Source: Phaeosaccion multiseriatum | Lineage: Eukaryota > Protista > Ochrophyta, other classes | DNA: 64,000 bases | Direction of reading: 5' to 3' | Assembly: GCA_965112735.1 (NCBI GenBank) | Contig: OZ218961.1 | Coordinates: 248,001-312,000, forward strand | Shown: in pieces, positions 5,201 to 63,087 of the stretch | Position numbering within the stretch: the stretch's first letter is position 1 | How the letters are laid out: each line of letters begins with the position of its first letter | Notes under the pieces: generated by a model | What the model was told of the DNA's origin: nothing | What the model saw: only the letters and a program-made list of their open reading frames with translations | Database searches by the model: none | Position numbers and translations under genes: made by a program

Positions 5201-6358
5201 GGAGGGCTCGATCGACTCAACACGCTCTTTGCAATGCACCCTTCACTCACTCACCCACTCCACTCCATTCACTCACTCCACTCACTCACCCACTCACTCA
5301 CTCCACTCACTCACTCACTCACTCACTCACTCCACTCACTCACTCCACTCACTCACTCACTCACTCACCCACTCACTCACCCACTCACTCACTCACTCAC
5401 TCACTCACCCACTCACCCACTCACTCACTCACTCACTCACTCACTCACTCACTCACTCACTCACCCACTCACTCACCCACTCCACTCCGTCCACTCACTC
5501 CCTCCCCTATCCATCCATAATGACAGTAAGACAGCAGCTGCACGCACCCGCACACATGATGAGCGGACGGGATGGACGGGGTGGGCCTACCCATCAGACA
5601 GACCTTCCCTTCTTTTTCTATTTTATTACTACTTGTACCTGGGATCGAACTCGGAGAGGCCGAGGATGACGTCAGGAGGGGGCAGCACGATCTCATCCAA
5701 GGGGACAAGGAGGCGCGATGTGCTGCATGAGTCACAAAAGATACGCCCACAGTGCCTTGGGGGGTGGGGGTGGGGGAGGGAGGGAGGGAGGGAGGGAGGG
5801 AGGGAGGGAGGGAGGGAGGGAGGGAGGGAGGGAGGGAGGGAGGGAGGGAGGGAGGGAGGGAGGGAGGGAGAGAGGGAGGGAGTGGGTGCGTGGTAGGGCG
5901 GGGATTCTACTGAAAGGCGACGCACCACGACAAAGAGGGATAGCTGCTGCTGTATCACCAACTACTACTGCTGCTACTTGCTGCTAGTGGCGTGCAGGGG
6001 AGAGATGGGGGCTAGTTGTGGTCTGCTATATATATATATATATATATATATATAGGAGACCCCCCTCCTCCTCCCACTCCTTCTCGTCCTCGCCTTCATG
6101 ACTAGACCGGCAAGCTCTGGGCATACGTATGCACATGCATACATACCTGCAGTGATGTTTCCGCGTGAGTGGACCAAACTTCTTGGTGCATTTCTCGCAG
6201 TTTGTCCTGTCCCCGTCGATCACCCAGCGCGGCACGAACTGAGAGCGAAGGTTGAAAGCCGCCTCCTCCCCCCTGCTGCTGCGCTGCCGATGTCGACGCT
6301 GGTGCGTTTGCTGGGCCTCCGCTGCAGTAGGGGCGTACAAGGCGGCCTCTGGCATCAT
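660..6358 (-). CDS. FYVE zinc finger + SYLF/Ysc84 (DUF500) domain protein, SH3YL1-like, about 11 exons
   Basis: FYVE motifs split over exons: WVIDGDRTNCEKCTKKFGPLTRKHHCR (~6147-6358), HCGRIFCDSCS (~5636-5757), RCCDTC (~4949-5056). SYLF motifs: REARGLAFITFVK (~4231-4363), IGLFVTGRFGSGLVVSRLPQGGWSAPSAIG...GFQVGGEVTD (~3575-3756), FSYAHSKGLFIG (~2835-2975), VSLEASTLVTRNDANRDFYG. GT-AG boundaries keep frame where checked. Confidence 0.88.
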
Positions 6359-6790
6359 GGTCACCGCAGATCTCCTCCTCCGCTTCCCCTCTTTGTTGTC
6401 GCTGGTCCAGACGTCGTCCAGGTTAGCCTCCTTTCGATCCAGCTATGCTCTGTCCCTCACCGTGACTACTGTAGGCGACAATTTCAGGCTGTGACGCCTA
6501 CGGAGAGTGCAGTTGCTGCTGTGGTGTGTTTGCTGTGTTGTGCTGCAGCTCTCATCCTCCTCTCAAAGAGGCTTCAAGGAGAACTTCGGAGCCGGAGGGA
6601 ACAGTAAAGTGAGCTCTTCTCCAAGGCAGGCAGGCAGGCAGATAAGGAGGTCAGGAAGTCAGGAATGGTGAAAGTGAGAAGGGGAGGAGGGGGGGTTATT
6701 TAAAAGAAGAGGGTTGAGGGTTGTGCACGACCAGTTGGCCCGCTCAGTGCTTCACGTACTCCTCATCCAAGAGATCACAGGCTGGCTAAA

Positions 6791-7705
6791 ATGCTTGCCA
6801 CGGCCTTGGCGAATCCCGAGCTGTTCCATCCCGTCTTGGGGTACGTGGGAAATGGGCACTTCTGCTTCGTGGGAGGCGCGAGAAAGGAGTGGAAGGCTAG
6901 CTACACAGCTTTGTATCCAGCAGTGGAGACAGCGTTTTCGTCTGTGGTCAGCTCAGTGGAGTGCGTGAACTGGGCGACAGGTCGGCAGGGCCTCGAGCTG
7001 AGTGTCAAGCTCTTCAAGGCCGCTGCCCGGCACGGAGATGTCGAGGTATGCAAGGCCCTCCATGGCAAGGACTGTCCCTGGGATGAACTGGCGTGTCACG
7101 AAACAGCGCAGAACAGAGAGCATGGCCTGAGCGTACTCAAGTGGCTGCGCTCAGAGGACCTTCCCGACAAGGAGCAGTGCCCATGGGACGGCTCCTATAT
7201 GTGTTGCCGAGCTGCAAGTAAAGGGCGCTTAGATATGCTCAAGTGGTTGCTGTCGGACGACGGTGGGGCAGACTTTGATGCCGTCTCTTGGAACGACGCA
7301 TGTAAAGGTGGGCATATTCCCGTCGTGGAATGGCTTCTGGACCATCCTCCCACGAGAGCCGTGCTGGAAGATAATGATTATGAAGAGTGGCGCCATGGGG
7401 CTTGGTTTGCAGCTGCAAAGGGCCGTCTCGAGGTGCTGCAGTTCCTCCACGCCAATGCTCGCCACCTCTGTGATTGGGATGCTGTGGTCTGTGTGCGTGC
7501 AGTCGTGCATGGTAAGCACCTTGCTGTGCTGAAGTGGCTCAGATCGGAGGAAGTGCAGTGCGAGTGGGATGAAACGTCGTGCCCGCAGGTCATCAGGGAC
7601 AGAGAGTTTAACGAGGGCGCGGTATGGGGAATCGACGCCAAAACCTTTGAGGATATCAAGCAATGGGTGCACGCCAATGGGCACCCCTGCGACTGCGAGG
7701 ACTGA
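6791..7705 (+). CDS. F-box-like + ankyrin-like repeat protein, family copy 1 (divergent, shorter N-terminus)
   Basis: Intronless 304-aa ORF with repeats CPWD..C..AA..G.L..LKWL, paralogous to six other copies in the window; lacks the METRLQRRR leader. Confidence 0.85.
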   Translation: MLATALANPELFHPVLGYVGNGHFCFVGGARKEWKASYTALYPAVETAFSSVVSSVECVNWATGRQGLELSVKLFKAAARHGDVEVCKALHGKDCPWDELACHETAQNREHGLSVLKWLRSEDLPDKEQCPWDGSYMCCRAASKGRLDMLKWLLSDDGGADFDAVSWNDACKGGHIPVVEWLLDHPPTRAVLEDNDYEEWRHGAWFAAAKGRLEVLQFLHANARHLCDWDAVVCVRAVVHGKHLAVLKWLRSEEVQCEWDETSCPQVIRDREFNEGAVWGIDAKTFEDIKQWVHANGHPCDCED

Positions 7706-8058
7706 GGAGAGGCAGTGGTGTGTCGAGTCGGGCCAAGGGCAAGCATGAAGGGTAGGGAGGGCACCTTCCACACACACACCCTCTGGGACGAGTCCCACAA
7801 GCTCATCGGAGACTTGAGCGGGAGGACGAAGGGGACAGGCTACAGGGGAGAGGGGCGGAGAAGGGACGGGGAAGTGTCTCCGACTTGAGAGTGGAGAGAG
7901 GAGAGAGGAGAGAGTGGAGGCATGATGAGAGCTTGAGGCATGGCATGGCTTCAGCCCAGGGGCAGGGCAGAGCCCCCGGGGAGCAGCGGTGTCAGCGATG
8001 TCGATCACTGGCCACTAGGAGGGTGCATTGTGTTTTATTGAATGTCGTGTCATATCAG

Positions 8059-8200
8059 GGAGTGGGTGAGTGAGTGAGTTAGTTTGTGAGAGTGGGTGGG
8101 TGAGTGAGTTAGTTTGTGAGAGTGGGTGAGTGAGTGAGTTAGTTTGTGAGAGTGGGTGAGTGAGTGAGTTAGTTTGTGAGAGTGGGTGAGTGAGTGTGTG
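8059..8200 (+). repeat. 30-bp minisatellite (gagtgggtgagtgagtgagttagtttgtga)n downstream of ankyrin genes
   Basis: Tandem copies here, with different copy numbers at ~14987-15205 and ~21211-21282. Confidence 0.85.
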
Positions 8201-8514
8201 ATTGAGGGAACGAGAGAGTAGGAACCCCAGGAAGCAGAACACCGCTACCAATAAAGTACAGAGGCAAACCCTTTTGCTATGTAGGGACGCGGCGGAGCAA
8301 ATATTTATTGATTTGAAACGGAATCACCTACAGAAACTGAAAGTGTGAATGTGAGTGTGTGTGCGTGTGTGTGTGTGTGTGTGTTAGTAAAGGGCTGTCA
8401 ACGGTGGCCAGGGGGGTTGGTCGAGGGAAGGCATCAGGGAGGATGTTTTGTTGGGCCTTTGTTGCCTCAGGGCCTCGACATCCAGACTCACAGATGGCGG
8501 GCCTGGCAGACCCG

Positions 8515-9122
8515 TGGCCAAGCAGATGGAGATGGACATCGTGACTCCCCCCAGGATGTTTGAGCTTCCATCCGATCATGAATATGGGGACGGCCACAAG
8601 TCCCTCATGATCGACGTCACGCTCACGGATGCCACCAACATTACCAATCGGGCCAAGGCATCGAAGGAGGCACTCGCGGCAGCCAAGAAGGCTGAAGCAA
8701 CCAAGCGCACCAGGTATGGTGTGCCACATGGAGGCATGGAGGGCCAGGGTGGAGACATCCACTATGACCCCACGAGGTATCATCTCGTCCCTTTTGGGAT
8801 GGAGCAGCAAGGTGCATTTGGTCCGTCAGCACAGATGTTTATCAAAACACTCGCCACCCACATGGCTGGGGGGCACGAACATCTTGACATGAGGGCTTAC
8901 GCGAGAGCTGTTTGCGTCATTCGGCGACGATTAGCCGTAGCGCTCCAGAGGGCCCGACACGAACGATCGGTTCGACACAGGATCCTGGCTGGTATCAACT
9001 TTGTTCCAATGGGGAGAACTGATGAGTCAGAGGGACACGACCTCGAGGGCTAAGTTCCCCGGGGCGGTGAGACATTACTTTTAGACAACCATAGATGGCA
9101 CTTAAGGGTGTAATATATATGA
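8515..9122 (+). mobile_element. 5'-truncated non-LTR retrotransposon (restriction-like endonuclease end, CRE/R2/NeSL type)
   Basis: Encodes MD...IDVT...AAAKKAEATKRTRY...LVPFGMEQQGAFG...F...LAVALQR, the PD-(D/E)xK RLE C-terminal pattern. Ends in a short 3' UTR and (TA)n, flanked by direct repeat agacccg (8508-8514, 9123-9129). The empty site is visible in paralogous units at ~21430-21530 and ~62770-62860. Confidence 0.8.
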
Positions 9123-9250
9123 AGACCCGGAGCTCTTAGACCCAGCTCCATACAAGATATACGGGCCGCAAGACCTCCCACGCGTGAATAAAGTAGGCAG
9201 CATAAGGAAGGGGGTGAGGCTGATAGAAAGAAAGGATTCTGCTGGCGCTG

Positions 9251-9492
9251 GTAAGTGCCTGCTACCGGAGATTGCCCGCCCCTCTCTTTGAGGGGGGAGC
9301 AAGACGGGGGAACAACATCAGAAGGATGCTGGCCATCTGGTCTCTCTGCTGCTGCCCTTCCTCCACAGCCGCTCACTCTCTCTCTCTCTCTCTCTCTCTC
9401 TGCTCCGCTCCGCCTTTCCTTCCGCTCCCCCCACCTTCATCAACTTACCTCCTCCAGCCAGCCGGTGCTTACTTACTCGCCTTTATCCCAAG
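9251..9492 (+). other. Probable 5'-UTR intron of the ankyrin gene family
   Basis: ctg|gtaagt donor, (CT)n tract and cccaag| acceptor about 18 nt before the ATG; the arrangement is conserved upstream of copies 2-6. Confidence 0.55.
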
Positions 9493-10496
9493 TCCTGTTT
9501 CGACGAAACAATGGAGACGAGGCTGCAGCGGAGGAGAACGGTATTGGGGCACGGGGAGACGCCGCATGACTCTGCGCAGGGAAGGAGGCTGAGACGGTCT
9601 CCAGCAACAACAGCATGTGGGGGTGCCAGTGTTACCGCTGCTTCAAGTTCCGGATACAATGGGCTGCTCTTTGAAGCTTGCCACGAGGCCCTCGAGAATC
9701 TCGAGCTGCTTCGTGCCATCTTGGCCCACTTGGGAAAGGGGCACCTCTGCTTCGTGGCTGGTGTGAGCAAGGAGTGGAAGGCCAGCTACACCGCTTTGTA
9801 TCCAGCAGTGAAGACAGCGTTTTCGTCTGTGGTCAGCTCATTGGAGTGTGTGAACTGGGCGACAGGTCGGCAGGGCCTCGAGCTAACTGAGGAGCTCTTC
9901 AGGGCCGCTGCCCGGCACGGAGATGTCGAGGTATGCAAGGCCCTCCATGGCAAGGACTGTCCCTGGGATGAAGATGTGTGTCACGAAACAGCGGAGAACA
10001 GCAAGCATGGCCTGAGCGTTCTCAAGTGGCTCCGCTCAGAGGACCTTCCCGACAAGGAGGAGTGCCCATGGAACGCTAGCGGCTGGGTCATGTGTGTCCT
10101 AGCTGCACTTGAAGGGCGCTTAGATATGCTCAAGTGGTTGCTGTCGGACGACGGTGGGGCAGACTTTCGTGCCATCTCTTGGAACATCGCATGTGAAGGA
10201 GGGGATATTCGCGTCGTGGAATGGCTTCTCTCGGCCCCTGACAAGGTTCTGAGGCGACCCTGGCCAGAACCTGGAACCCGGCCGGCTGGCGCCGGCCAGA
10301 ACCTGGAACCTGACCCAGCTCTTCGGTTCCAGGTTAGGGGTGACTGAGGGAAAGAGGGACTGATGCCCAGCCCTGAGTGCCCATCGTGTGTGGCTGGGAC
10401 CGCAAAATAGTATACAAATAATAAAAAAATAGTATACGTCATGTACATTTTATAATGGAGAGTTCAGAGTTCTTTCGCGCGCGCCAACCTACTAGC

Positions 10497-13400
10497 CTAC
10501 CCTTCGCGGCACGCCGGACAAAACCAATCCCCCCCAGGTACCTCAGTGAGAGGAGGCGTCAGACAGCCGAGGTGATACTCTCCACCACACGCGTCAGTAT
10601 CACATAGCAGCATGTGTGGACGCTCCTCTGTGACGTCCTGCCTGCACACCACACACACTGTCCCTCCCCTCCTCTTCTTGCCGATGTGCAAATCTCTGTA
10701 ACTCACTGGCGCCCCTGTCGACCGGCCCCGGGACGACCTCGTGCTGACCATAACTCCCAGCTTGCGCTGATGAGGCGTGCTTTCTTCTCCCTCGTCTTCA
10801 CTGTCCTCGTCTTCTGATGCGACCTCCTCCTCCTCATCTGCTTCGCGTAAGCCTCGATTTTGCCTGTCGATATCCTCTTTGCTTGAGTCATTGACAATAC
10901 CGACGATGCTGTCATGCTCCTCCTCCGTGATGGTAAAGCGCATCAAGCGCCTGGTCAAAAGTGTCTGCATGGTCGGGCTGGTGGTGGCGACATCAGAGGG
11001 GACTGACAAAGCGCTTTGACCCTTCCCTCCCTTCTTCTTGCCCTTCTTTTTTTGCTTTCCCTCCGTCCCAACTGAGAAGCCTTCGTACTGGTAGGCCGCG
11101 TTGCCGAACGAAGTCAACGCACCATAAATCGCCTCCACGTTCACGCTTGCATCATGGGTGTAGTTGTATCCACATCACCGGAGCCACGCTTTGCTTCATC
11201 CCCACCTGCGCTGCCCTTGAAAAAATGTCGCACGCCCGGGTGTGAAGGCTCTACTGTCTTTCCCATCTTCACTGTCTTTCCAGCTCCTCTGCGGACCTTT
11301 TTGTACGCCTCCTTTACGTCTTCTCTTAGCTGGACCACAAAGAAGAGCTCATTGCCCGAGCCATTCGCAGCCTTCACGTAGACCAGATTTCCCTCTTGGT
11401 GCACGATCTGGGTGCCCGTGCTGCTCTGCCCCCCCCCTCCACCCCTGAAGCTGCTCGAACCTGGCTTATACCCAGACGTGTCATCACCCAGACTCTCGAT
11501 CTTGTCGTACGCGATTGACAGGGGAAGAGAACCAACTTGGGCCTTTCCCTTGTCTGTGACCCGCGTTACGCGTGATGGCCTCATGATTCGAGCCGCCTGA
11601 CGAAGTATACGCAGCTCCTGCTCTCGCGTCGCTTGCTCCGCTGGAGACAGAGAGCGTGCGTGAACTTTCCTTCTCATGTAGACGGGGGCAGCGACACGCC
11701 TGCTGAAATTGAGAGAGTGGTGGTAGTGGCCGCGGAACGTTTGCTGGCCGCTGGACCTGCTGTCCGTGTTGTAGACATATCCCCTGCCACCACTCCATCG
11801 CTTCGCCATCTCAACCCCGACAATCTGTCGCCGTCGAAGCACTTGGAGCACATCTGGAATGTTGGTGTTCCCCCCACCCCCATTGCGGTACTGCGTGAAG
11901 CTGGTCTCCACATTTAAGGTGAGCAATGCCTTAGCCATAATCTTGTCGGTCACACGTGCAGGCACTCCCTGCAGGACAAGAGAGACCCAAAGTGGAGCAA
12001 GGGAGCATCGGTATAGGAGGAGGGGGAGATGGGGGAAATGTCAGCGCAAGATAAAAAATAGCAAGGCAGACAGGCAGTGGGCTCTTCCCCTCCGTCGTGT
12101 CGTGGCACTTGTGACTCACCTCCTCCTTCAGCCTCTTCATCAGCTTCGAGAAGGCGATGACGGCGCACTTGATGCTCTTCCTTAGCGAAGGCGAGATGGC
12201 GCCCTCGGGCCCCTGAACGGATGCGAGCGACTTCCCGGTCCGCTTTGCGGCGTCCTCTGCCAGCTTTTCGACGTGGAGGTGCACAGAGGCCATCTTGGCT
12301 GCAGACTCGGTCAATGACTTGGCATTTCTGTGCATGTCCACGCCGTCAACAGCGCAGGAAGGGAGGAGCTGGTACGCCTCGGCCAAGCGCCGGAGCATTG
12401 GAAGAAGGCACTCCGCTAGAGGGTACATGTCCGTAAGAAGCCGGATACACTGTGTGCCACTGTCTGAGAACAGGAAACTTTTCCCACCAAGGAAGCAGCC
12501 CCAGGTAGGTTTGAAGAGAGCGACCATTTTGGCCGTGCCGCTCCCAGTGCTCTTGCCCGCTTTGTCGTTGCCGATGCCGCCTGCCACCACACGTACAGTC
12601 CATTGCTCTGTGGCAGCACTCTGCCACAACATCTTGACGGAGTGGTCGCCTTGATCAACCACGTACATGACGTGTCTCGCATCCGCATCTTCGGACACCT
12701 CAGTCGGTGCTGCATGCAATCCACAGGGCGCCTCGCCAACGCTCTCCACTGCGAGCAATAGATACCCTCCACCCTCTCCCGCCCCCCCCCTCACCCCTCT
12801 AGACTCTCCTCCAGCTCTGCTCCTCGTGCGATGCTCATTCCGCGCTTCGACCGTCTCTGCAGAATCCTTCTCCTCCTCCACCTCCGCCCCCTGTCCCCTT
12901 CCCCCCCCCCTCCGCCTCCTCCTCCTCCTCCTTCTCCTCCTCCTCCTCCTCCTCCTCCTCCTCCTCCTCCTCCTCCTCCTCCTCCTCCTCCTCCTCCTCC
13001 TCTACCTTCTCCTCCTCCTCTTCCTCCTTCTGCTCTTCTCTCCCCTCCTTTTCTTCGTCTTGTCGGGAAGATCTGTCCAACACGAACAAGGACCTATCCA
13101 CGAGTACTGCAATGCAAGAAGCCGAAAGAGCAGTCACACCTGCCGGCTCTCCGGGAAGCGAGGCGACCACAGTGCAAAGGGCAGAGGTGGGGTCGCGCGC
13201 TCGAAAGGAGAGCTGAACGAGCCCCCCTTTACGCCCCGGCAGCTGCTGAGACACGAAAAGATCGTAGTCCTTGTCCGAGCCCAAGCCTACACACACCGCA
13301 ATGGGACTCCGAAGCGGCATGAAGTGCTCAACGACCTTCCCTGGGGCGTCACCTTGACTTTGCTGCAGTGTCTGCACTATCTTGAGCTCGGCTTTCTTCT

Positions 13401-13650
13401 TCCTCCCTGGCACACCCGCCCCACCTTCCACAGTGTCAATCCCATCCCGGCCCTCGTCAAAATCGCGCGTCTCGTGAGACCCTGCCTGTCAATGACTCCT
13501 TGACGTGAACAACGTACAACTTGTTGTCTCTGCTGCTGCAAATGTACACACAGTCGCCTACTACTGCCACTCCGCCGGTATCCTTGAGGCGAGCATCTCG
13601 CAGGACAACTGTGCATGTCGCCGGCACGTGCGGTACTTTGACCATCAACA
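10497..13650 (-). pseudogene. Frameshifted transposase-like gene: NHL-like beta-propeller, P-element-like C-terminal catalytic motif, PHD finger
   Basis: Consecutive ORF pieces 13457-13648, 12835-13431, ~12119-12881, 11141-11965 and 10497-11144, with a GT-AG intron at ~11973-12118. NHL-like YVVDQGDHSVKML and FLFSDSGTQCIRLL; LTLNVETSFTQYRNGGGGNTNIP resembles the P-transposase E..F...R..GG...P motif; terminal C4HC3 PHD (CVVC...LLCDTDACGGEYHLGCLTPPL..VPGGDWFCPAC). Confidence 0.65.
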
Positions 13651-13872
13651 GAATGCCGAGAACAGAGTACAGCGAGTTTTGCCAGAGGCATGAGGGGGGA
13701 AGTTAGGTAGCATGAGGAACGTAAGTGTAGTTGGTGTTCATATAAGTAATCGAAGTAATACAAGAAGGCTGGGAGAGAGAAGTGTTGGCATCTTGTGGAG
13801 TCTCAAAGGTGTTTGGTATGTTCGAATCCGGATTGTCGCCAGTTGGGGAACACGTGCTTCATATGAACGGCA

Positions 13873-14032
13873 CGAACGATCGGTTCGCCACAGGATCCTG
13901 GCTGGTATCAACTTTGTTCCAATGGGAAGAACTGATGAGTCAGAGGGACACGACCTCGAGGGCTAAGTTCCCCGGGGCGGTGAGACATTACTTTTAGACA
14001 ACCATAGATGGCACTTAAGGGTGTAATATATA
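13873..14032 (+). mobile_element. ~160-bp 3' end of the same non-LTR retrotransposon, nested in the DNA transposon
   Basis: Near-identical to ~8958-9120 (HERSVRHRILAG...LEG* + 3' UTR + (TA)n); flanked by 10-bp direct repeat atgaacggca at 13863-13872 and 14033-14042. Confidence 0.88.
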
Positions 14033-15366
14033 ATGAACGGCATGCATGTCGCAGGAGGAGGATAGATAGGGAAGTGAGATTGATAAAGAAAGCTAATACA
14101 CGCTCAACATAGGATACGAACCCCTTGCTGTTGGTTGTCTGGTGTGGTCTGTCCCACATCCTAGGCTCACTTTATCATTGCCTTATTACATGGCGTTCCC
14201 CCAGAACCTGGAACCTGGCCGGCTGGCGCCGGCCAGAACCTGGAACCCAGAACCTTGTCAGGGGCCGAGCTTCTCGGGCATCCTCACACGAGAGCCTTGC
14301 TGGAACGGAATGGTCATGACGAGTGGCGCAGTGGGGCTGAGTGTGCAGCTGGCAAGGGCTGTCTCGAGGTACTGCAGCTGCTCCACGCCAATGCTCGCCA
14401 CCTCTGTTATTGGGATGCGTATGTCTGTACAGAGGCAGTCGAGCAGGGTAAGAGCCTTGCTGTGCTGAAATGGCTCAGATCGGAAGAAGTGCAGTGTGAG
14501 TGGGATGAAATGTCGTGCCCGCAGGTCATCAGGGACAGAGAGTTTAACAAGGGCGCGGTATGGAAAATCGACGCCAAAACCTTTGAGGATATCAAGCAAT
14601 GGGTGCACGCCAATGGGCACCCCTGCGACTGCGAGGACTGAGGAGAGGCAGTGGTGCGTCAAGTCGGGCCAAGGGCAAGCATGAAGGGTAGGGAGGGCAC
14701 CTTCCGCACACACTCTCTCTGGGCCGAGTCCCACAAGCTCATCGGAGACTTGAGCGGGAGGACGAAGGGGACAGGCTACAGGGGAGAGGGGCGGAGAAGG
14801 GATGGGGAAGTGTCTCCGACTTGAGAGAGGAGAGAGGAGAGAGTGGAGGCATGATGAGAGCTTGAGGCATGGCATGGCTTCAGCCCAGGGGCAGGGCAGA
14901 GCCCCCCGGGAGCAGCGGTGTCAGCGATGTCGATCACTGGCCACTAGGAGGGTGCATTGTGTTTTAGTGAATGTCGTGTCATATCAGAGTGAGTGAGTTA
15001 GTTTGTGAGAGTGGGTGAGTGAGTGAGTTAGTTTGTGAGAGTGGGTGAGTGAGTGAGTTAGTTTGTGAGAGTGGGTGAGTGAGTGAGTTAGTTTGTGAGA
15101 GTGGGTGAGTGAGTGAGTTAGTTTGTGAGAGTGGGTGAGTGAGTGAGTTAGTTTCAGAGACTGGGTGGGTGAGTGAGTTAGTTTCAGAGAGTGGGCGAGT
15201 GAGTGTGTGATTGAGGGAACGAGAGAGTAGGAACCCCAGGAAGCAGAACACCGCTACCAATAAAGGACAGAGGCAAACCCTTTTGCTATGTAGGGACGCG
15301 GCGGAGCAAATATTTATTGATTTAAACAGGAATCACCTACAGAAGCTGAAAGTGTGAGTGTGTGAG

Positions 15367-15399
<33 letters not shown>

Positions 15400-15544
15400 T
15401 AGTAAAGGGCTGTCAACGGTGGCCAGGGGGGTTGGTCGAGGGAAGGCATCACACGGAGGAAGCTCAGGGAGGATGTTTTGTTGGGCCTTTGTTGCCTCAG
15501 GGCCTCGACATCCAGACTCACAGATGGCGGGCCTGGCAGACCCG

Positions 15545-16139
15545 TGGCCAAGCAGATGGAGATGGACATCGTGACTCCCCCCAGGATGTTTGAGCTTCCA
15601 TCCGATCATGAATATGGGGACGGCCACAAGTCCCTCATGATCGACGTCACGCTCACGGATGCCACCAACATTACCAATCGGGCCAAGGCATCGAAGGAGG
15701 CACTCGCGGCAGCCAAGAAGGCTGAAGCAACCAAGCGCACCAGGTATGGTGTGCCACATGGAGGCATGGAGGGCCAGGGTGGAGACATCCACTATGACCC
15801 CACGAGGTATCATCTCGTCCCTTTTGGGATGGAGCAGCAAGGTGCATTTGGTCCGTCAGCACAGATGTTTATCAAAACACTCGCCACCCACATGGCTGGG
15901 GGGCACGAACATCTTGACATGAGGGCTTACGCGAGAGCTGTTTGCGTCATTCGGCGACGATTAGCCGTAGCGCTCCAGAGGGCCCGACACGAACGATCGG
16001 TTCGACACAGGATCCTGGCTGGTATCAACTTTGTTCCAATGGGGAGAACTGATGAGTCAGAGGGACACGACCTCGAGGGCTAAGTTCCCCGGGGCGGTGA
16101 GACATTACTTTTAGACAACCATAGATGGCACTTAAGGGT
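15545..16139 (+). mobile_element. Second copy of the 5'-truncated RLE retroelement, co-duplicated with its flank
   Basis: Same 5' junction (agacccg|tggcc) and identical translation as 8515-9122; the 3' junction and TSD are altered. Confidence 0.82.
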
Positions 16140-16553
16140 ATGTTACAGCTCATACCTCCCACGCGTGAATAAAGTAGGCAGCATAAGGAAGGGGGCGAGG
16201 CTGATAGAAAGAAAGGATTCTGCTGGCGCTGGTAAGTGCCTGCTACCGGAGATAGCCCGCCCCTCTGTTCTTGAGGGGGGAGCACGACGGGGGAAGCGGG
16301 GAAGCAGCTGTGGGGAAAAGGAGTGAGAGGAGTTACAACAGATGTATGAATCGTGCTGGCCATCTGGTCTCTCCGCTGCTGCCCCTCCTCCACAGCCGCT
16401 CACTCTCTCTCTCTCTCTCTCTCCCTCCCTCTCCCCTCCACCTTTCCTTCCACTCCCCCCTTCTTCAGCAACTTACCTGCTCCGGCCAGCAGGGCTTACT
16501 AGAGGTGCTTACTTCCTCGCATTTATCCCAAGGTCTCCTGTTTCGACGAAACA

Positions 16554-17633
16554 ATGGAGACGAGGCTGCAGCGGAGGAGAACGGCATTGGGGCACGGGGA
16601 GCCGCCACATGACTCTGCACAGGGAAGGAGGCTGAGACGCTCTCCAGCAACTACAGCATGTGGGGGTACCAGTGCTACGCCCTTAGTGAATGAGCTGCTC
16701 TTTGAAGCTTGCCATGAGGCCCTGGAGAATCTCGAGCTGCTTCGTGCCATCTTGGAGCGCTTGGGAAAGGGGCACTTCTGCTTCGTGGCTGGTGTGAGCA
16801 AAGATTGGAAGGCCAGCTACACCGCTTTGTATCCAGCAGTGGAGACAGCGTTTTCGTCTGTGGTCAGCTCTGTGGAGTGCGTGAACTGGGCGACAAGTCG
16901 GCAGGGCCTCGAGCTGAGTGTCAAGCTCTTCAGGGCCGCTGCCCGGCACGGAGATGTCGAGGTATGCAAGGCCCTCCATGGCAAGGACTGTCCCTGGAAT
17001 AAAAATGTGTGTCACGAAACAGCGTTTAACAATAAGCATGGCCTGAGAGTACTGCAGTGGCTGCGCTCAGAGGACCTTCCCGACAAGGAGCAGTGCCCAT
17101 TGTACGAGGACGGCTCCACTACGTGTGCTATTGCACGTCAAGGGCGCTTGGATATGCTCAAGTGGTTGCTGTCGGACGACGGTGGGGTAGACTTTGATGC
17201 CGGCTCTTGGAACAGTGCATGCATAGGCGGGCACATCCCCGTCGTGGCATGGCTTCTCGAGCATCCTCCCACGAGAGGCTTGCTGGAAGAGAATGAAGAC
17301 GGCTCTTGGTGCTATGGGGCTTGTTATGCAGCTGGCTGGGGCGGCCTCGAGGTACTGCAGTTCCTCCACGCCAATGCTCGCCACCTCTGTTATTGGGATG
17401 CTCGGGTCTGTAAATATGCAGTCATGTGTGGTAAGAACCTTGCTGTGCTCAAGTGGCTCAGATCGGAGGAAGTGCAGTGCGAGTGGGACGAAGAGTCGTG
17501 CCCACAGGTCATCAGGGACGAAGGAGTGTATGAATATGATTACGAGGAGGAATGGGATATCGACGCCAAAACCTTTGAGGACATCAAGCAGTGGGTGCAC
17601 GACAATGGACACCCCTGCGACTGCGAGGACTGA
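16554..17633 (+). CDS. F-box-like + ankyrin-like repeat protein, copy 3 (359 aa)
   Basis: Intact intronless ORF, METRLQRRR...HPCDCED. Confidence 0.9.
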   Translation: METRLQRRRTALGHGEPPHDSAQGRRLRRSPATTACGGTSATPLVNELLFEACHEALENLELLRAILERLGKGHFCFVAGVSKDWKASYTALYPAVETAFSSVVSSVECVNWATSRQGLELSVKLFRAAARHGDVEVCKALHGKDCPWNKNVCHETAFNNKHGLRVLQWLRSEDLPDKEQCPLYEDGSTTCAIARQGRLDMLKWLLSDDGGVDFDAGSWNSACIGGHIPVVAWLLEHPPTRGLLEENEDGSWCYGACYAAGWGGLEVLQFLHANARHLCYWDARVCKYAVMCGKNLAVLKWLRSEEVQCEWDEESCPQVIRDEGVYEYDYEEEWDIDAKTFEDIKQWVHDNGHPCDCED

Positions 17634-18273
17634 GGAGAGAATAAGCTTGCACAGATCGGGAGAGAGAGGTATGTACCCAGGGGGGCAGACGGAAGCCTCG
17701 ACTTGCTCCCCTCCGTTCATTGCATTGAGATTGAGATGCGGGAAATGCCCATCCACACGTCCACACGCCCACACGGCCGCATGGGAAGGGAACTTTGGAA
17801 ATGAGTTTCCTTCCGGCGCTTTTTACTCACTTATCACCTAAGAAACTGAAAGTGTGCGTAGGAGGCTTTGGAAGCGATTGACGAGCACGGTGGGGTGGCC
17901 TCGGCGTGGCTTCATACTGAGTGAGTTAGTGATTGAGTGAGTGAGTGAGTGAGGGGGCTTCATACTGAGTGAGTCAGGGGCTGCCGTGGACGCCTTGGTA
18001 TTCCTCACTGCCCGCCGTCCGCTTCCCTCTGGCAGAAGGGTTGTGATTGAGTAATAATAAGAAATGAGCATAGAAAATCGCATACTCTCGAAGAAGAGCT
18101 CCACGTGTGCTCCATACCCAATGTCCTGTACGCCCTTTGTCCTTATCCCCTTTGCCTACTGCACGGCCTTGTCACTGACCCGATACCCTCCGGCCCACAG
18201 TCCCGAATTAGACCAAAATAGACCTTGTCGATACCAAATGTTGATGTCCTGCCCATACACCTACAATGTGTGT

Positions 18274-18327
<54 letters not shown>

Positions 18328-18477
18328 GTGTGTGTGTGTGTGTGCGTGTGTGTGTTAGCGAAGGGCTGTCAACGGTGGCCATGGGGGTTGGTCGAGGGAA
18401 GGCATCACACGGAGGAAGCTTGCAGCTTGGAGTAGCATGGTATATATATATAGAAATGTTTCTCTGCTATTTTGTTG

Positions 18478-19265
18478 TCGGCCCCAGACTGGCCTGGAAG
18501 CCTATGCTCTAGGCCGGCCATTTTTTCTCCCTAGGCCGGCGGTTCTAGGCCTAGGTCTCGACCTATCTGATTACTGATTATGGCGTCAGCCGGCCTGGTT
18601 GCTGATTGCAGCCGGTGACCAGCCGGCCTGATTACTGATTATGCGCCAGCCGGGGGCTGATTACTGATTACGGCCGGCGCACACCGTAACCTTGTCCAGG
18701 GTCGGAGGGAGGGAGGGAGGGAGGGAGGGAGGGAGGGAGGGAGGGAGGGAGGGAGGGAGGGAGGGAGGGAGGGAGGGAGGGAGGGAGGGAGGGAGGGAGG
18801 GAGGGAGGGAGGGAGGGAGGGAGGGAGGGAGGGAGGGAGGGAGGGAGGGAGGGAGGGAGGGAGGGAGGGAGGGAGGGAGGGAGGGAGGGAGGGAGGGAGG
18901 GAGGGAGGGAGGGAGGGAGGGAGGGAGGGAGGGAGGGAGGGAGGGAGGGAGGGAGGGAGGGAGGGAGGGAGGGAGTCAACCCTGGACAAGATTATCTGAT
19001 TACTGATTACGGCCGGCGCAGCCGGCCTGATTACTGATTATGACCGGCACCAGCCGGCCTGGTTGCTTACAGCCGGTGACCAGCCGGCCTGAGTACTGAT
19101 TATGCGCCAGCTGGGGGCTGGGGGCTGATTACTGATTGCGGTCCAGGCGCACACCGTAATCTTGTCCAGGGTCGATAGGCCTAGGCCGGGGGCCGGGGGG
19201 GCTGCGCCAAAAGTAGGCCTAGGCCAGGGGCCTGCGGCCGCCCTAGGCAACTTTAGGCTTCTAGG
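18478..19265. mobile_element. Nested MITE-like cluster with TCG-type termini around a (GGGA)n tract
   Basis: Outer ctaggcc-rich element begins tcggcccc at ~18478. Two inner units carry ctgattactgatt repeats; the second has TIR-like ends tcaaccctggacaagatta (~18976) and taatcttgtccagggtcga (~19175). Absent from paralogous ankyrin units. Confidence 0.65.
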
Positions 19266-19607
19266 TTGGGCCTTTGGGCTACTGGCTGCCTCAGGGCCTC
19301 GACATCCAGACTCACAGATGGCGGGTCTGGCAGACCAAGATGTCTACATAGAAAACCGGCAAAGACCTCCCACGCGTGAATAAAGTAGGCAGCATAAGGA
19401 AGGGGGCGAGGCTGATAGAAACAAAGGATTCTGCTGGCGCTGGTAAGTGCCTGCTACCGGAGATGGCCCGCCCCTCTGTTCTTGAGGGGGGAGCAAGACG
19501 GGGGAAGCGGGGAAGCAGCTGCGGGGAAGAGGAGTGGGAGGAGTTACAACAGATGTATGAATCATGCTGGCCATCTGGTCTCTCTGCTGCTGCCCTTCCT
19601 TCACGGC

Positions 19608-19649
<42 letters not shown>

Positions 19650-19773
19650 ACCTCTCCCCTCCGCCTTTCCTTCCACTCCATTCTTGTTCAGCAACTTATC
19701 TGCCCCGGCCAGCAGGGCTTACTGAAGGTGCTTACTTCCTCGCATTTATCCCAAGGCCTTTTTCGACGAAACA

Positions 19774-20856
19774 ATGGAGACGAGGCTGCAGCGGAGGAGA
19801 ACGGCATTGGGGCACGGGGAGGCGCCACATGACTCTGCACAGGGAAGGAGGCTGAGACGGTTGAGATCGTCTCCGGCAACAACAGCAAGTGGGGGTGCCA
19901 GTGCTACGCCCTCAGTGAATGGGCTGCTCTTTGAAGCTTGCCACGAGGCCCTGGAGAATCTCGAGCTGCTTCGTGCCATCTTGGCGCACTTGGGAAAGGG
20001 CCACCTCTGCTTCGTGGCTGGTGTGGGCAAGGAGTGGAAGGCCAGCTACGCCGCGTTGTATCCAGCAGTGGAGACAGCGTTTTCGTCTGTGGTCAGCTCT
20101 GTGGAGTGCGTGAACTGGGCGACAGGTCGGCAGGGCCTCGAGCTAACTGAGGAGCTCTTCAGGGCCGCTGCCCGGCACGGAGATGTCGAGGTATGCAAGG
20201 CCCTCCATGGCAAGGACTGTCCCTGGGATGAAGATGTGTGTCACGAAACAGCGGAGAACAGCAAGCATGGCCTGAGAGTACTGAAGTGGCTCCGCTCAGA
20301 GGACCTTCCCGACAAGGAGCAGTGCCCATGGGACGCTAGCGGCTGCGAAATGTGTTGCCAAGCTGCAAGTGAAGGGCGCTTGGATATGCTCAAGTGGCTG
20401 CTGTCGGACGACGCTGGGGCAGACTTTCGTGCTATCTCTTGGAACATCGCATGTGAAGGAGGGGATATTCCCGTCGTGGAATGGCTTCTCGGGCATCCTC
20501 CCACGAGAGCCTTGCTGGAACAAGAAGATGATGACGACTGGCGCGATGGGGCTGGGTTTGCAGCTGGAGGGGGCCGCCTTGAGGTACTGCAGCTGCTCCA
20601 CGGCAATGCTCGGCACCTCTGTGATTGGGATGTGAGCCTCTGTATGAATGCAGTCATGGAAGGTAAGAGCCTTGCTGTGCTGAAATGGCTCAGATCGGAA
20701 GAAGTGCAGTGTGAGTGGGATGAAATGTCCTGCCCACAGGTCATCAGGGACAGAGAGTTTAACGAGTGCGCGGTATGGGACATCGACGCCAAAACCTTTG
20801 AGGATATCAAGCAATGGGTGCACGCCAATGGGCACCCCTGCAACTGCGAGGACTGA
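19774..20856 (+). CDS. F-box-like + ankyrin-like repeat protein, copy 4 (360 aa)
   Basis: Intact intronless ORF, paralogous to the other copies. Confidence 0.9.
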   Translation: METRLQRRRTALGHGEAPHDSAQGRRLRRLRSSPATTASGGASATPSVNGLLFEACHEALENLELLRAILAHLGKGHLCFVAGVGKEWKASYAALYPAVETAFSSVVSSVECVNWATGRQGLELTEELFRAAARHGDVEVCKALHGKDCPWDEDVCHETAENSKHGLRVLKWLRSEDLPDKEQCPWDASGCEMCCQAASEGRLDMLKWLLSDDAGADFRAISWNIACEGGDIPVVEWLLGHPPTRALLEQEDDDDWRDGAGFAAGGGRLEVLQLLHGNARHLCDWDVSLCMNAVMEGKSLAVLKWLRSEEVQCEWDEMSCPQVIRDREFNECAVWDIDAKTFEDIKQWVHANGHPCNCED

Positions 20857-21763
20857 GGAGAGGCAGTGGTGTGTCAAGTCGGGCCAAGGGCAAGCATGAA
20901 GGGTAGGGAGGGCGCCTTCCGCACACACTCTCTCTGGGCCGAGTCCCACAAGCTCATCGGAGACTTGAGCGGGAGGACGAAGGGGACAGGCTACAGGGGA
21001 GAGGGGCGGAGAAGGGATGGGGAAGTGTCTCTGACTTGAGAGAGGAGAGAGGAGAGAGGAGAGAGTGGAGGCATGATAAGAGCTTGAGGCATGGCATGGC
21101 TTCAGCCCTGGGGCAGGGCAGAGCCCCCCGGGAGCAGCGGTGTCAGCGATGTCGATCATTGGCCACTAGGAGGGTGCATTGTGTTTTAGTGAATGTCGTG
21201 TCATATCAGGGAGTGGGTGAGTGAGTGAGTTAGTTTGTGAGAGTGGGTGAGTGAGTGAGTTAGTTTGTGAGAGTGGGTGACTGAGTGTGTGATTGAGGGA
21301 ACGAGAGAGTGAGTAGGAGGAGGAACCCCAGGAAGCAGAACACCGCTGCTTATAAAGAACAGAGGCAAACCCTTTTGCTATGTAGGGATGTGATTTAAAA
21401 TAGGCTGTTGGGCCTTCGCTGCCGCAGGGCCTCGACATCCAGACTCACAGATGGCGGACCTGGCAAACCCGGAGCTAATTAGACCCGGAGCTTTACTTCA
21501 TACAAGATATTACGGGCCGCAAGACCTCCCACGTGTGAATAAAGTAGGCAGCATAAGGAAGGGGGTGAGGCTGATAGAAAGAAAGCATTCTGCTGGCGCT
21601 GGTAAGTGCCTGCTACCGGAGATAGCCCGCCCCTCTCTTTGAGGGGGGAGCAAGACGGGGGAAGAAGGAGGAGTTACGACAAATATGATCATGCCATCTG
21701 GTCTCTCTGCTGCTGCCCTTCCTCCACAGCCGCTCACTCTCTCTCTCTCTCTCTTTCTCTCCC

Positions 21764-21796
<33 letters not shown>

Positions 21797-21905
21797 GCTC
21801 CGCTCCGCCTTTCGTTCCACTCCCCCCTCCTTCAGCAACTTCTCTCCTCCAGCCAGCCGGTGCTTACATACTCGCCTTTATCCCAAGGCCTGTTTCGACG
21901 AAACG

Positions 21906-22985
21906 ATGGAGACGAGGCTGCAGCGGAGGAGAACGGCATTGGGGCACGGGGAGGCGCCACATGACTCTGCACAGGGAAGGAGGCTGAGACGGTCTCCGGC
22001 AACAACAGCATGTGGGGGTGCCAGTGCTACGCCCTCAGTGAATGGGCTGCTCTTTGAAGCTTGCCACGAGGCCCTGGAGAATCTCGAGCTGCTTCGTGCC
22101 ATCTTGGCGCACTTGGGAAAGGGGCACCTCTGCTTCGTGGCTGGTGTGAGCAAGGAGTGGAAGGCCAGCTACACCGCTTTGTATCCAGCAGTGGAGACAG
22201 CGTTTTCGTCTGTGGTCAGCTCTGTGGAGTGCTTGAACTGGGCGACAAGTCGGCTGGGCCTCGAGCTGAGTGTCAAGCTCTTCAGGGCCACTGCTCGGTA
22301 CGGAGATGTCGAGGTATGCAAGGCCCTCCATGGCAAGGACTGTCCCTGGGATGAGTATGTGTGTACCGCAACAGTGCGTAACAGAGAGCATGGCCTGAGC
22401 GTACTCAAGTGGCTGCGCTCAGAGGACCTTCCCGACAAGGAGCAGTGCCCATGGGACGGCTCCTATATGTGTTGCCGAGCTGCAAGTAAAGGGCGCTTAG
22501 ATATGCTCAAGTGGTTGCTGTCGGACGACGGTGGGGCAGACTTTGATGTCGTCTCTTGGAACGACGCATGTAAAGGTGGACATGTTCTCGTCGTGGAATG
22601 GCTTCTCGAGCATCCTCCCACGAGAGCTGTCCTGGAACGGAATGATTATAACGAGTGGCGCGATGGGGCTTTGTATGCAGCTGAAGGTGGCCGCCTCGAG
22701 GTGCTGCAGTTCCTCCACGCCAATGCTCGCCACCTTTGTGATTGGGATGCTCAGGTCTGTCTGTATGCAGTCATGTTCGGCAAGAGTCTTGCTGTGCTCA
22801 AGTGGCTCAGATCGGAAGACGTGCAGTGTGCGTGGGACGAAGAGTCGTGCCCACAAGTCATCAGGGACAGAGGATTGTATGAATGGTATTACGAGGGCGC
22901 GGTATGGGACATCGACGCCAAAACCTTTGAGGACATCAAGCAGTGGGTGCACGCCAATGGGCACCCCTGCGACTGCGAGGACTGA
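21906..22985 (+). CDS. F-box-like + ankyrin-like repeat protein, copy 5 (359 aa)
   Basis: Intact ORF; start placed at the family ATG (METRLQRRR, 21906) rather than the upstream extension in the ORF track. Confidence 0.9.
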   Translation: METRLQRRRTALGHGEAPHDSAQGRRLRRSPATTACGGASATPSVNGLLFEACHEALENLELLRAILAHLGKGHLCFVAGVSKEWKASYTALYPAVETAFSSVVSSVECLNWATSRLGLELSVKLFRATARYGDVEVCKALHGKDCPWDEYVCTATVRNREHGLSVLKWLRSEDLPDKEQCPWDGSYMCCRAASKGRLDMLKWLLSDDGGADFDVVSWNDACKGGHVLVVEWLLEHPPTRAVLERNDYNEWRDGALYAAEGGRLEVLQFLHANARHLCDWDAQVCLYAVMFGKSLAVLKWLRSEDVQCAWDEESCPQVIRDRGLYEWYYEGAVWDIDAKTFEDIKQWVHANGHPCDCED

Positions 22986-23632
22986 GGAGAGAATAAGCTT
23001 GCACAGATCGGGAGAGAGAGGTACGTACCCAGGGGGGCAGACGGAAGCCTCGACTTGCTCCCCTCCGTTCATGGCATTGAGATTGAGATGCGGGAAATGC
23101 CCATCCACACGTCCACACGGCCACACGGCCGCATGGGAAGGGAACTTTGAAGAGATTGAAGACATGCGTATCCTTCCAGAGGCTTTTTACTGACTTGATT
23201 GGAATCACCTAAGTAGGAGGCTTTTTACTGACTTGATAGGAATCACCTAAGAAACTGAAAGTGTGTGTAGGAGGCTTTGGAAGCGATTGACGAGCACAGT
23301 GGCCTCGGCGTGGCTTCATACTGAGTGAGTCAGGGGCTGCCGTGGACACAGACCCCTTGGTGTTCCTCACTGCCCGCCGTCCGCTCCCCTCTGGCAGACG
23401 GGTTGTGATTGAGTAATAATAAGAAATAAGCATAGAAAATCGCATACCCACGGCACCAGACCGGCCTGCTGCTTGCTTGTGCTTGGGCCGTTGCAGGTGC
23501 AGCACTCTTGAAGAAGAGCTCCACGTATGCTCCATAGAACTGAAGCTGAAACTGAAGCTGAAACTCGAAACAGCGGCAGCAGGATGGGGTGAAACATGAA
23601 ACTGAGACAGGTCTATTCAAGGAAGCTGACAC

Positions 23633-26187: not shown

Positions 26188-33310
<7,123 letters not shown>

Positions 33311-39378: not shown

Positions 39379-39419
<41 letters not shown>

Positions 39420-40194
39420 CACGAGGAGTCCCTGGATCCCCATAGAACGCCACCCGCCATGCATCAACCTACAACCTACCCGCTGTTGCTGAGCTGGTCC
39501 GCATATCCAAGCCAGACCTTGAGGTATCGGATGTCGTTGGTGTAGCGCTCGTCAGCCTTGAAGGTCCGACTACACCGCTCCAGCAGCTCAAAGGGGGTGA
39601 TTTGGTCACTGGGAAAGTCGTCCTGTACGGCCTTGATGTAACGTGTCCACACGCTGAGGGGGTCTGCGCCGTCGTAGGCCTCGATCTCCTTTTCGAAGCG
39701 TCTGGGTGCGCACCAGGGGGAGGAAGGGATAAAGGTGGTGGGTGCGGTAGAGAGGCGTCAGGTGGGAGACAGGACAAGTGGCGGTCGTATTGGGAGGAGG
39801 AGGAGGAGGAGGAGGAGGAGGAGGAGGAGGAGCACCAGTCCACACCCAGCATTCAGGAGATGGGGAAAGGAACAACATCAGATGGAGGCCTGAGGTACTT
39901 GGTCCGTCCCTTCTTCTCCGAGAAGAGAGCGGTCCCACTACCGCAGTTGCCGTTGAGCTTGTCTCCTTTCCGACCTGATGCCCTGCCAGCCCTCTCTGCC
40001 GCTGGTATCGCCCCCCTTACTTACCCCCTGAGCTCCTGCAGCTTGCTGGCCTTGCTGGCCTCGAAGGCCGCGCTCTCTCCACCAAAGGCCCTCTTGATCT
40101 TCTCCACCTTCCTCCCCCTCTTCAGAGGCAACACGTTCTCCTTGCTCAGCTCCCATGCGTGCTCTGAATCTCCTCTTGCTACACCAGACGCCAT
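33797..40194 (-). CDS. Spindle-checkpoint protein of the MadBub (BUB1/BUBR1/MAD3) family, no kinase domain seen
   Basis: WELSKENVLPLKRGR (KEN1); TPR region DPLSVWTRYI...LLERC...YTNDIRYLKVWLGYAD...IGAKLGLFWVAWA; ABBA-like FAVFDE, MEIFVD, FSIFDD, FAIFAD; second KEN (DKENA); GLEBS-like ELSVEERRAAIY; CDI-like TIHSKFALEELSIMF. Confidence 0.88.
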
Positions 40195-63008: not shown

Positions 63009-63087
63009 TCGACCACATTCTCGATAGCAGGTAGCATGCCGGCTGGCGCCGGCAATAGCAGATCGCAGAGAGCACGTCAGGGGTCGA
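63009..63087. mobile_element. 79-bp internally deleted MITE with tcgacc...ggtcga ends
   Basis: Flanked by direct repeat ttaggt (63003-63008, 63088-63093); contains ccggctggcgccgg and ends gtcaggggtcga, like the 4-kb element terminus gtcaggggccga. Confidence 0.7.

Follow-up and report, generated by a model that had tools for sequence, protein, structure and literature searches.

A cluster of F-box-like/ankyrin paralogs with hypervariable codons at recurrent repeat positions in the ochrophyte alga Phaeosaccion multiseriatum

Cluster organization and gene copies

The window analyzed here, a 64,000-nt stretch of the Phaeosaccion multiseriatum genome (contig OZ218961.1, positions 248,001 to 312,000), harbors a cluster of paralogous ankyrin-repeat genes, each ~360 amino acids (aa) long and headed by a divergent F-box-like module, in which differences between copies are almost confined to about six positions per repeat on the predicted binding face. 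Searched by tblastn with a single copy as query, the window yields seven paralogs: five within 6791-22985, one of them split by an apparent transposon, and two more on the minus strand at 61318-64000. The earlier note on this DNA had counted seven copies, and seven are present, but two of them lie outside the interval 6791-22985 in which it had placed them. The copies, with their open reading frames (ORFs), and the conserved blocks upstream of them are as follows.

6791-7705, plus strand: copy c1, ORF of 304 aa; the first ~50 codons of the other copies are absent
9511-10230, plus strand: 5′ part of c2 (c2a), codons 1-240, broken after repeat 4
14269-14641, plus strand: 3′ part of c2 (c2b), repeats 5-6 and C-terminal cap, frame still open
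16554-17633, plus strand: c3, intact ORF of 359 aa
19774-20856, plus strand: c4, intact ORF of 360 aa; reference copy for the structure model and residue numbering
21906-22985, plus strand: c5, intact ORF of 359 aa from the homologous ATG
61318-62418, minus strand: c6, intact ORF of 366 aa in inverted orientation
63466-64000, minus strand: c7, cut by the window end; 3′ half only (repeats 3-6 and cap)
19363-19506, plus strand: conserved upstream block of c4, 144 nt, ~270-410 nt 5′ of the ATG
16152-16295: equivalent block of c3; further equivalents lie 5′ of c2, c5, and c6

Flanking sequence has been duplicated along with the genes, at 84-92% identity, which indicates that the copies are segmental duplicates, partly inverted; because c7 is cut at position 64000, the cluster may continue beyond the window end. 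The coding region of each gene appears to be a single exon. Two listed ORFs run past the genes proper: that of the c2 5′ part continues into the inserted element as far as a stop at 10347, and the 459-aa ORF listed for c5 begins at a GTG (21606) and reads through the CT repeat that precedes the gene. DNA homology between c1 and the other copies begins at 6793, with an ATG at that boundary, and the F-box-like segment of c1 carries ~12 changes in 28 residues where the other copies are nearly identical, which suggests relaxed constraint on the head of this copy.

The 144-nt upstream block is invariant at ~90% of its columns across five copies, a conservation that exceeds that of silent coding sites. 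A splice-donor-like GGTAAGT lies within it, and a (CT)n tract whose length varies comes next; the block may represent a 5′ untranslated exon with an intron, or a promoter.

Ankyrin fold of the predicted proteins

Four parts make up each protein: an N-terminus that is basic and disordered, a divergent F-box-like module with three predicted helices, an array of six to seven ankyrin repeats, and a conserved C-terminal cap that includes a loop of variable length. The ankyrin assignment made in the earlier note is borne out by both profile and structure searches. All five copies tested exceed the Pfam cut-offs for Ank_4 (41.7-51.5 bits; cut-off 22.7) and Ank_2 (32.2-39.5 bits; cut-off 27.3). Copy c4 was modeled in AlphaFold2 from 16 sequences; the mean predicted local distance difference test (pLDDT) score is 79, rising to ~90 in the repeats, and the model contains paired helices in six to seven repeats. 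The top Foldseek matches for this model in the PDB are Espin1-AR, FEM1B (a receptor of the cullin-RING ligase CRL2), MIB1 ANK, and designed ankyrin repeat proteins (DARPins). In the Pfam scan of the window proteins, ankyrin families alone were reported, and neither NACHT nor NB-ARC. Repeats R1-R6 within one protein differ widely in sequence. On the reference copy, the relevant segments are the following.

19936-20073, plus strand: F-box-like module of c4, ~residues 55-100, with predicted helices at 63-73, 78-81, and 86-95
20215-20691, plus strand: ankyrin repeats 2-6 of c4, residues 148-306, which carry the hypervariable codons
20749-20790, plus strand: C-terminal variable-length loop of c4, alignment columns 331-343

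Distribution of variable positions

The 16-codon alternation of constant and variable codons quoted in the earlier note sits exactly at 7475-7522, and the three lists of variable residue pairs given there agree with the sequence, as do the five versions of the C-terminal loop, which is longer by 0-5 residues in c3, c5, c6, and c7. Over codon alignment columns 92-369, the amino acid is the same in all copies at 167 codons; 59 codons carry two residues, 26 carry three, and 24 carry four to six (in at most seven copies). With repeats 2-6 set in a common register through HMMER alignment to a DARPin, replacements concentrate at ankyrin registers 2, 5, 6, 9, 10, 13, and 14, and helix 2 (registers 17-24) stays constant, as do registers 7, 8, 11, 12, and 15. 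In 20,000 circular-shift permutations of the variability profiles of the repeats, an agreement of this degree was not reached once (p < 5e-5); the recurrence of the alternation in other repeats, as the note had described it, extends in one register across repeats 2-6.

Mapped onto the c4 model, the variable positions occupy the loop before helix 1 and, within helix 1, the pattern i, i+1, i+4, i+5, i+8, i+9, which by the register and secondary structure of the model corresponds to one face of the helix, in line with the turn and first helix named in the note as the binding face of ankyrin repeats. The positions varied in DARPin libraries and set beforehand for comparison (2, 3, 5, 13, 14) exceed all others 2.9-fold in variability (mean 0.84 vs 0.29; Mann-Whitney p 4e-6). 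Some of the greatest variability falls at registers 6, 9, and 10, where DARPins and the consensus repeat have a fixed Thr, His, and Leu; the natural pattern is in this respect broader than the engineered one.

Silent sites set the scale for these differences. Codons with an invariant amino acid show diversities of 0.003, 0, and 0.09 at positions 1, 2, and 3, which identifies the plus-strand frame as the coding frame and implies that the copies are, or recently were, functional genes; hypervariable codons vary at all three positions (0.55/0.55/0.42). Mean pairwise diversity at four-fold sites of amino-acid-invariant codons is 0.119, and the duplicated noncoding flanks range from 0.03 to 0.17 overall (0.075-0.17 upstream and 0.026-0.074 for the most similar downstream flanks, with the 3′ flanks of c1, c2b, and c4 differing by 2.6-5.8%). 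The framework combines neutral drift at silent sites with constancy at the protein level. A framework almost unchanged even at silent sites had been reported from the single repeat quoted above, and this is nearly so there; gene-wide, however, silent sites are not frozen but diverge in the same range as the flanks.

Antisense ORFs of 205-287 aa accompany the genes, one per paralog (7229-8008, 14258-14875, 17067-17774, 20296-21159, and 22497-23165, all minus strand). Change confined to third positions is seen in the plus frame and not in these ORFs, so antisense coding is rejected and the ORFs are taken to be by-products of composition rather than genes.

Tests of selection

Replacement diversity (pN) reaches 0.45 on the helix-1 face, against 0.07 in the core and 0.04 in helix 2, whereas silent diversity (pS) in invariant codons is 0.12; after multiple-hit correction, the excess of replacement over silent change is, by our own arithmetic, approximately four- to five-fold. 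The same excess is visible in repeats 5-6 of individual pairs: c1 and c2b differ at 2/27 four-fold sites and 19/64 residues, and c6 and c7 at 1/23 four-fold sites and 20/64 residues. Gene-wide dN/dS spans 0.45-1.4 and the M0 model gives ω (dN/dS) of 0.91.

Site models were fitted with a home-made Goldman-Yang codon likelihood on an IQ-TREE topology, with branch lengths scaled from M0. M2a improves on M1a by twice the log-likelihood difference (2ΔlnL) of 132.9, assigning ω of 8.6 to 9% of sites. To limit the effect of recombination on these models, each segment was also given a separate tree. The three repeat segments then return 2ΔlnL of 16.3, 25.1, and 63.6; the C-terminal cap returns 4.0 and the F-box/first-repeat segment 0. 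Fourteen sites have a posterior > 0.95 for ω > 1 (c4 numbering): D154, E161, E192, Q196, S199, E228, Q250, G261, G265, G266, S288, M291, N292, and E296. Rate differences by themselves can produce a large M1a/M2a statistic, and the third site class was therefore compared in three versions, with the following log-likelihoods (lnL).

Neutral hot-spot, 6.2-fold faster at ω = 1: lnL -2838.88
M2a, selection only: lnL -2835.31
Rate and ω both free (rate 2.6, ω 2.9): lnL -2834.33

With the hot-spot rate left free, ω = 1 is rejected (2ΔlnL 9.1, p ~0.003), and a raised rate at the variable codons is not required (2ΔlnL 2.0). Selection is favored over mutation, although far less overwhelmingly than the standard test implies. 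Positive selection at the variable sites, as the earlier note had surmised, agrees with both the replacement excess and the preference of the site models for ω > 1.

Several considerations pull the other way. The likelihood implementation is home-made, with scaled branch lengths, and the sample comprises seven or eight sequences from one genome. The neutral hot-spot model lies only 3.6 lnL units below M2a, and single-segment tests of ω = 1 are weak (p 0.03, 0.09, and not significant). Recombination and multi-nucleotide changes inflate site-model tests, and the variable codons are near saturation, where synonymous and replacement changes are hard to separate (Nei-Gojobori pS there is 0.39). The helix-1 face is itself placed by register and secondary structure, not by measured exposure. 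Pairwise Nei-Gojobori tests within repeats 5-6 are not significant; because this method books part of the multi-hit changes as synonymous, four-fold sites of unchanged codons were taken as the neutral yardstick.

It could be argued from such results that constraint has simply been relaxed, with exposed helix-1 and loop positions of redundant copies tolerating any residue and drifting neutrally. The gene-wide dN/dS range and M0 estimate would fit this account, as would the broken state of c2, the decaying N-terminus of c1, and the near-equal fit of the neutral hot-spot model. But neutral sites cannot outpace silent sites, and the helix-1 face does so (0.45, against 0.12 at four-fold sites and flanks). 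In repeats 5-6, 30% of residues differ between pairs whose silent divergence is 4-7%, and M1a, which already permits ω = 1, is rejected (2ΔlnL 133). Relaxed constraint as the sole explanation is, in our assessment, unlikely.

Gene conversion and directed diversification

Ordinary gene conversion or recombination has taken place between the paralogs. Codon columns 176-224 show no difference between c1 and c5, and columns 128-164 none between c2a and c4; a GENECONV-style permutation gives p = 0.0002 for each of these pairs (26 pairs tested). Downstream flanks sort the copies into three classes that mismatch the relationships of the coding regions.

The earlier note had also raised a targeted diversification process, in which selection would be secondary and the variable codons would be produced by retroelement-guided mutagenesis, by short-tract conversion from a hidden cassette library, or by a localized mutator. 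Variation at all three codon positions is compatible with such a process, as are differences of 2-3 nucleotides per codon between neighboring copies despite low silent divergence, the mosaic sharing of some states between copies alongside the conversion tracts, and the competitive fit of a 6-fold rate rise at ω = 1. The variable nucleotides nevertheless show no adenine enrichment in any copy, and all four bases occur there; the adenines of framework codons are invariant in all copies; and no reverse transcriptase or other enzyme domain was detected among 40 ORFs scanned in the window, a scan that was not exhaustive. On these three grounds a diversity-generating retroelement is rejected. No template copy for the variable positions was found, and silent diversity is not raised in framework codons touching the variable ones (0.099, vs 0.121 in distant codons). 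When both rate and ω are free, ω = 1 is rejected and rate = 1 is not, and the differences are fixed between germline paralogs and explicable by ordinary selection. The proposal of a targeted process is not supported, and programmed or templated diversification seems highly improbable. Equally improbable is the stronger notion that these codons are not just selected but written by a germline process, whether short-tract templated conversion from cassettes or a codon-targeted mutator; if it were true, the family would be a natural eukaryotic equivalent of a synthetic binder library.

The N-terminal module

F-boxes dock proteins on the Skp1/cullin ligase, where they serve as substrate receptors of Skp1-cullin-F-box complexes. 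The label "F-box-like" given to the N-terminus in the earlier note is partly borne out: a direct match is lacking, but a link exists by way of relatives. For the window proteins themselves, Pfam reports no F-box match, whether for whole proteins (E up to 1) or for the isolated N-terminal segment (E up to 10), and the window subfamily profile (A3) matches no solved F-box protein in the PDB. The Leu-Pro that opens helix 1 of F-boxes is replaced by Glu-Asn in the window proteins; in c1, an Asn-Pro follows one position later. The isolated module is modeled as short helices with a pLDDT of 85, and Foldseek returns 13 weak hits for it, among them Skp2 (1fs2_A) and FBXO22 (8s7e_B) over 33 residues with a root-mean-square deviation of 1.6 Å and E ~5, which agrees with an F-box fold but is not significant.

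Relatives of the window proteins tell a different story. The module is a conserved unit in ~25 of the 150 best relatives, some of which have a canonical Leu-Pro-x-Glu-Leu-Leu start and a Pfam F-box match at E 1e-9. Aligning A3 with a profile of these Leu-Pro relatives (A4) in hhalign gives a probability of 98.1% (E 9.7e-14, 64 columns). A4 in turn matches FBXW7, FBXO31, FBXL17, and Skp2, and the mixed profile A2 matches F-box proteins only, with FBXO22 at E 7e-5. Weak Pfam F-box matches are given by 5/19 subfamily sequences scanned, a set that includes four window copies, none of them matching. Judged by these profile comparisons, the N-terminal module is a divergent F-box homolog.

Alternatively, the proteins could be scaffolds with no ligase role, their degenerate F-box no longer binding Skp1, and act as inhibitors, decoys, or adaptors. 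The Glu-Asn substitution, the missing Pfam and PDB matches, and the nonsignificant fold search would all be natural under this alternative. Set against it, the module is under purifying selection among c2-c6 (ω 0.43, with no positively selected class), is kept in Chrysoparadoxa and ~25 other relatives, and is homologous to canonical F-boxes, with weak Pfam matches in part of its own subfamily. We regard the scaffold alternative as doubtful, although it is the most serious of the competing explanations.

Relatives, neighboring genes, and the question of viral origin

An exhaustive HMMER search of 1.8 billion representative proteins recovers 905 relatives at E < 1e-10. The best full-length relatives, at 34-37% identity, belong to the ochrophyte alga Chrysoparadoxa australica; other closest full-length relatives are from Chloropicon primus and Balamuthia mandrillaris. 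The Chrysoparadoxa proteins share the N-terminal motif and the C-terminal cap with the window proteins, and are encoded by single genes, not arrays. A word-indexed protein search with c4 gave five weak matches only, no exact-sequence record was found for the c4 protein, and no relatives appeared in two metagenome scans or in a scan of IMG/VR viral contigs.

Compared with predicted viral structures by Foldseek, the c4 fold matches ankyrin and F-box/ankyrin proteins of pandoraviruses, cedratviruses, and pithoviruses at E down to 5e-10, far more strongly than it matches the PDB. Some of these viral proteins are annotated as F-box plus ankyrin (Pithovirus, Pandoravirus), and tandem duplications of ankyrin, MORN, and F-box proteins occur in Pandoravirus genomes (PMC5995976). 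The cluster might accordingly be imagined as part of a giant-virus element that had integrated, or as recently acquired from such an element, with genes that would manipulate host ubiquitination for the virus, the role proposed for ankyrin/F-box families of pandoraviruses, pithoviruses, and poxviruses. Much in the window stands against this: its G+C is even (0.55-0.62), no viral hallmark domain was found among the 40 ORFs scanned, the IMG/VR scan found no relative, the closest full-length relatives are cellular, and ordinary cellular genes are present, including a PHD finger and the following.

46796-47446, plus strand: phosphoglycerate kinase exon; best solved-structure match 7zy7_A
38882-39463, minus strand: Mad3/BUB1 homology domain
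57973-59427, plus strand: pentatricopeptide repeat (PPR) protein; no relatives detected in the word-indexed protein search

Even G+C and cellular neighbor genes lead us to reject an integrated giant virus. The window is cellular DNA, and a viral origin of the cluster is very unlikely. As to the phosphoglycerate kinase exon itself, it is preceded by ~60 residues that are possibly a targeting peptide, and several phosphoglycerate kinases ranking next after 7zy7_A, apparently bacterial, score above the yeast enzyme.

Inserted element and spacer sequences

The interruption of c2 is caused by a sequence that looks like a DNA transposon, bounded by a 7-bp target-site duplication, GCTTCTC (10224-10230 and 14269-14275).

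10231-14268: inserted element, 4038 bp, with perfect 21-bp terminal inverted repeats and 47-nt subterminal repeats

Its ORFs occupy 10497-12881 on the minus strand in three frames, one with a PHD finger; no recognizable transposase was found among them. Both halves of c2 are still open, so the insertion looks recent. A segment of ~170 bp near the right end of the element (13868-14037) is 97-98% identical to the spacers at 8955-9123 and 15985-16139; local DNA was captured by the element, or a piece of the element has remained in the spacer. An identical 201-aa ORF lies in the spacers after c1 (8448-9053) and after c2b (15478-16083), within a block of ~97% DNA identity that is absent from the c4-c5 spacer; the ORF has no Pfam domain and no homolog in the word-indexed protein search.

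Immediately 5′ of c1, a short ORF (6026-6364, minus strand) contains a Cys/His-rich stretch that resembles a FYVE-type zinc finger (R-K-H-H-C-R). Long micro- and minisatellite tracts with periods of 4, 3, 8, and 41 nt are frequent in the window (5190-5960, 12897-13064, 18640-19006, 25314-25653, and 27058-27511, among others) and create long spurious repeated-peptide ORFs on both strands. Rfam and tRNA scans of the window gave no matches.

Discussion

We favor, with a probability of about 0.68, the interpretation that these genes form a lineage-specific paralog cluster with an F-box-derived head, whose evolution combines duplication and conversion with diversifying selection that acts on the binding groove, and in which the ligase and target roles are inferred. 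The family grows by segmental duplication, with paralogs exchanging tracts through gene conversion or recombination, and its members diverge by replacements that accumulate ~4-5 times faster than silent changes at fixed positions of repeats 2-6, the core and helix 2 staying constant. The inner helices and loops of ankyrin repeats form a concave binding groove, so that the observed pattern fits diversifying selection on ligand specificity; each paralog may bind a different target. The F-box-like head would dock the protein on a Skp1/cullin ligase, leading to ubiquitination of bound targets. These targets could be fast-changing partners such as virus or parasite proteins, or products of self/non-self systems or of selfish elements. 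The family probably consists of ubiquitin-ligase substrate receptors, and we infer a possible role in immunity, self/non-self recognition, or genetic conflict.

The family shows clearly which ankyrin positions nature varies for specificity, namely the whole exposed inner-helix face, including positions 9 and 10, which protein engineers have kept fixed. If foreign or selfish proteins are indeed what these putative ligase receptors bind, the genes would become candidates for intracellular recognition in a protist/algal lineage whose immunity is almost unknown, and the seven paralogs would offer ready-made specificity variants for binding and degradation assays.

Families of comparable design occur in several lineages. 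Nematode and plant F-box and MATH-BTB families were reportedly found by Thomas, in Genome Research in 2006, to be expanded and under positive selection in the substrate-binding domain, and Caenorhabditis F-box genes have since been surveyed again (PMC8665587). Those F-box families resemble the present cluster in their lineage-specific tandem expansion, in pairing a conserved ligase-docking module with a fast-changing binding domain, and in the recognition of pathogen proteins likewise proposed for them. In the present proteins, by contrast, an ankyrin solenoid takes the place of FTH/FBA, Kelch, leucine-rich repeat (LRR), or MATH as the variable domain, the F-box is degenerate (no Leu-Pro), and the organism is neither animal nor land plant. 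Fungal NOD-like receptors (NLRs) carry hypervariable ankyrin, tetratricopeptide repeat (TPR), and WD40 repeats, and in the ankyrin repeats approximately five positions each are under positive selection; these lie on the concave face, in its inner helices and hairpin/loop (Dyrka et al., 2014; PMC4986451). Selected positions on the groove face of each repeat, together with concerted evolution or gene conversion, are common to both systems. Unlike the fungal receptors, however, the window proteins have no NACHT or NB-ARC domain in the Pfam scan, and their internal repeats are not near-identical, which indicates that diversity lies between paralogs at the same repeat rather than in repeat shuffling or changes in repeat number.

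The Pandoravirus, Pithovirus, and Cedratvirus families (PMC5995976) share the same ankyrin flavor, the combination of F-box and ankyrin in some members, and tandem duplication. The genomic context here, unlike theirs, is cellular. Poxvirus ankyrin/PRANC proteins place their F-box-like motif at the C-terminus, whereas the module described here is N-terminal. In DARPins, which are hit in the PDB as 6ar6_B and 6gvm_D, the library positions chosen by Binz and colleagues in 2003 are said to be 2, 3, 5, 13, 14, and 33. A constant framework with few variable binding-face positions per repeat is shared with these engineered proteins, and positions 2, 5, 13, and 14 vary in both; yet the strongest sites in the window include 6, 9, and 10, several repeats are of non-canonical length, and diversity is spread across paralogous genes rather than a library.

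Among stramenopile algae, the brown alga Ectocarpus has candidate pathogen receptors of the LRR and TPR types in which exons are shuffled (Zambounis et al., 2012; PMC3341825). Both that case and the present one concern fast-evolving repeat-protein candidates for recognition, but repeats in Ectocarpus are separate shuffled exons, while here the coding sequence is apparently uninterrupted and point replacement acts at fixed codons. Clusters of S-locus F-box genes in Solanaceae and Rosaceae mediate collaborative non-self recognition. They are likewise linked F-box paralogs, each with its own target specificity and with diversity kept by selection, although their binding domain is different and nothing ties the Phaeosaccion cluster to mating or incompatibility. 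Rapidly evolving substrate-receptor and ankyrin families are already established in nematodes, plants, fungi, and giant viruses, and the present cluster is a good new example rather than a new principle; what it adds to the nematode and plant F-box families and the fungal NLRs is its combination of domains, its diversification independent of repeat shuffling, and its use of the whole inner-helix face.

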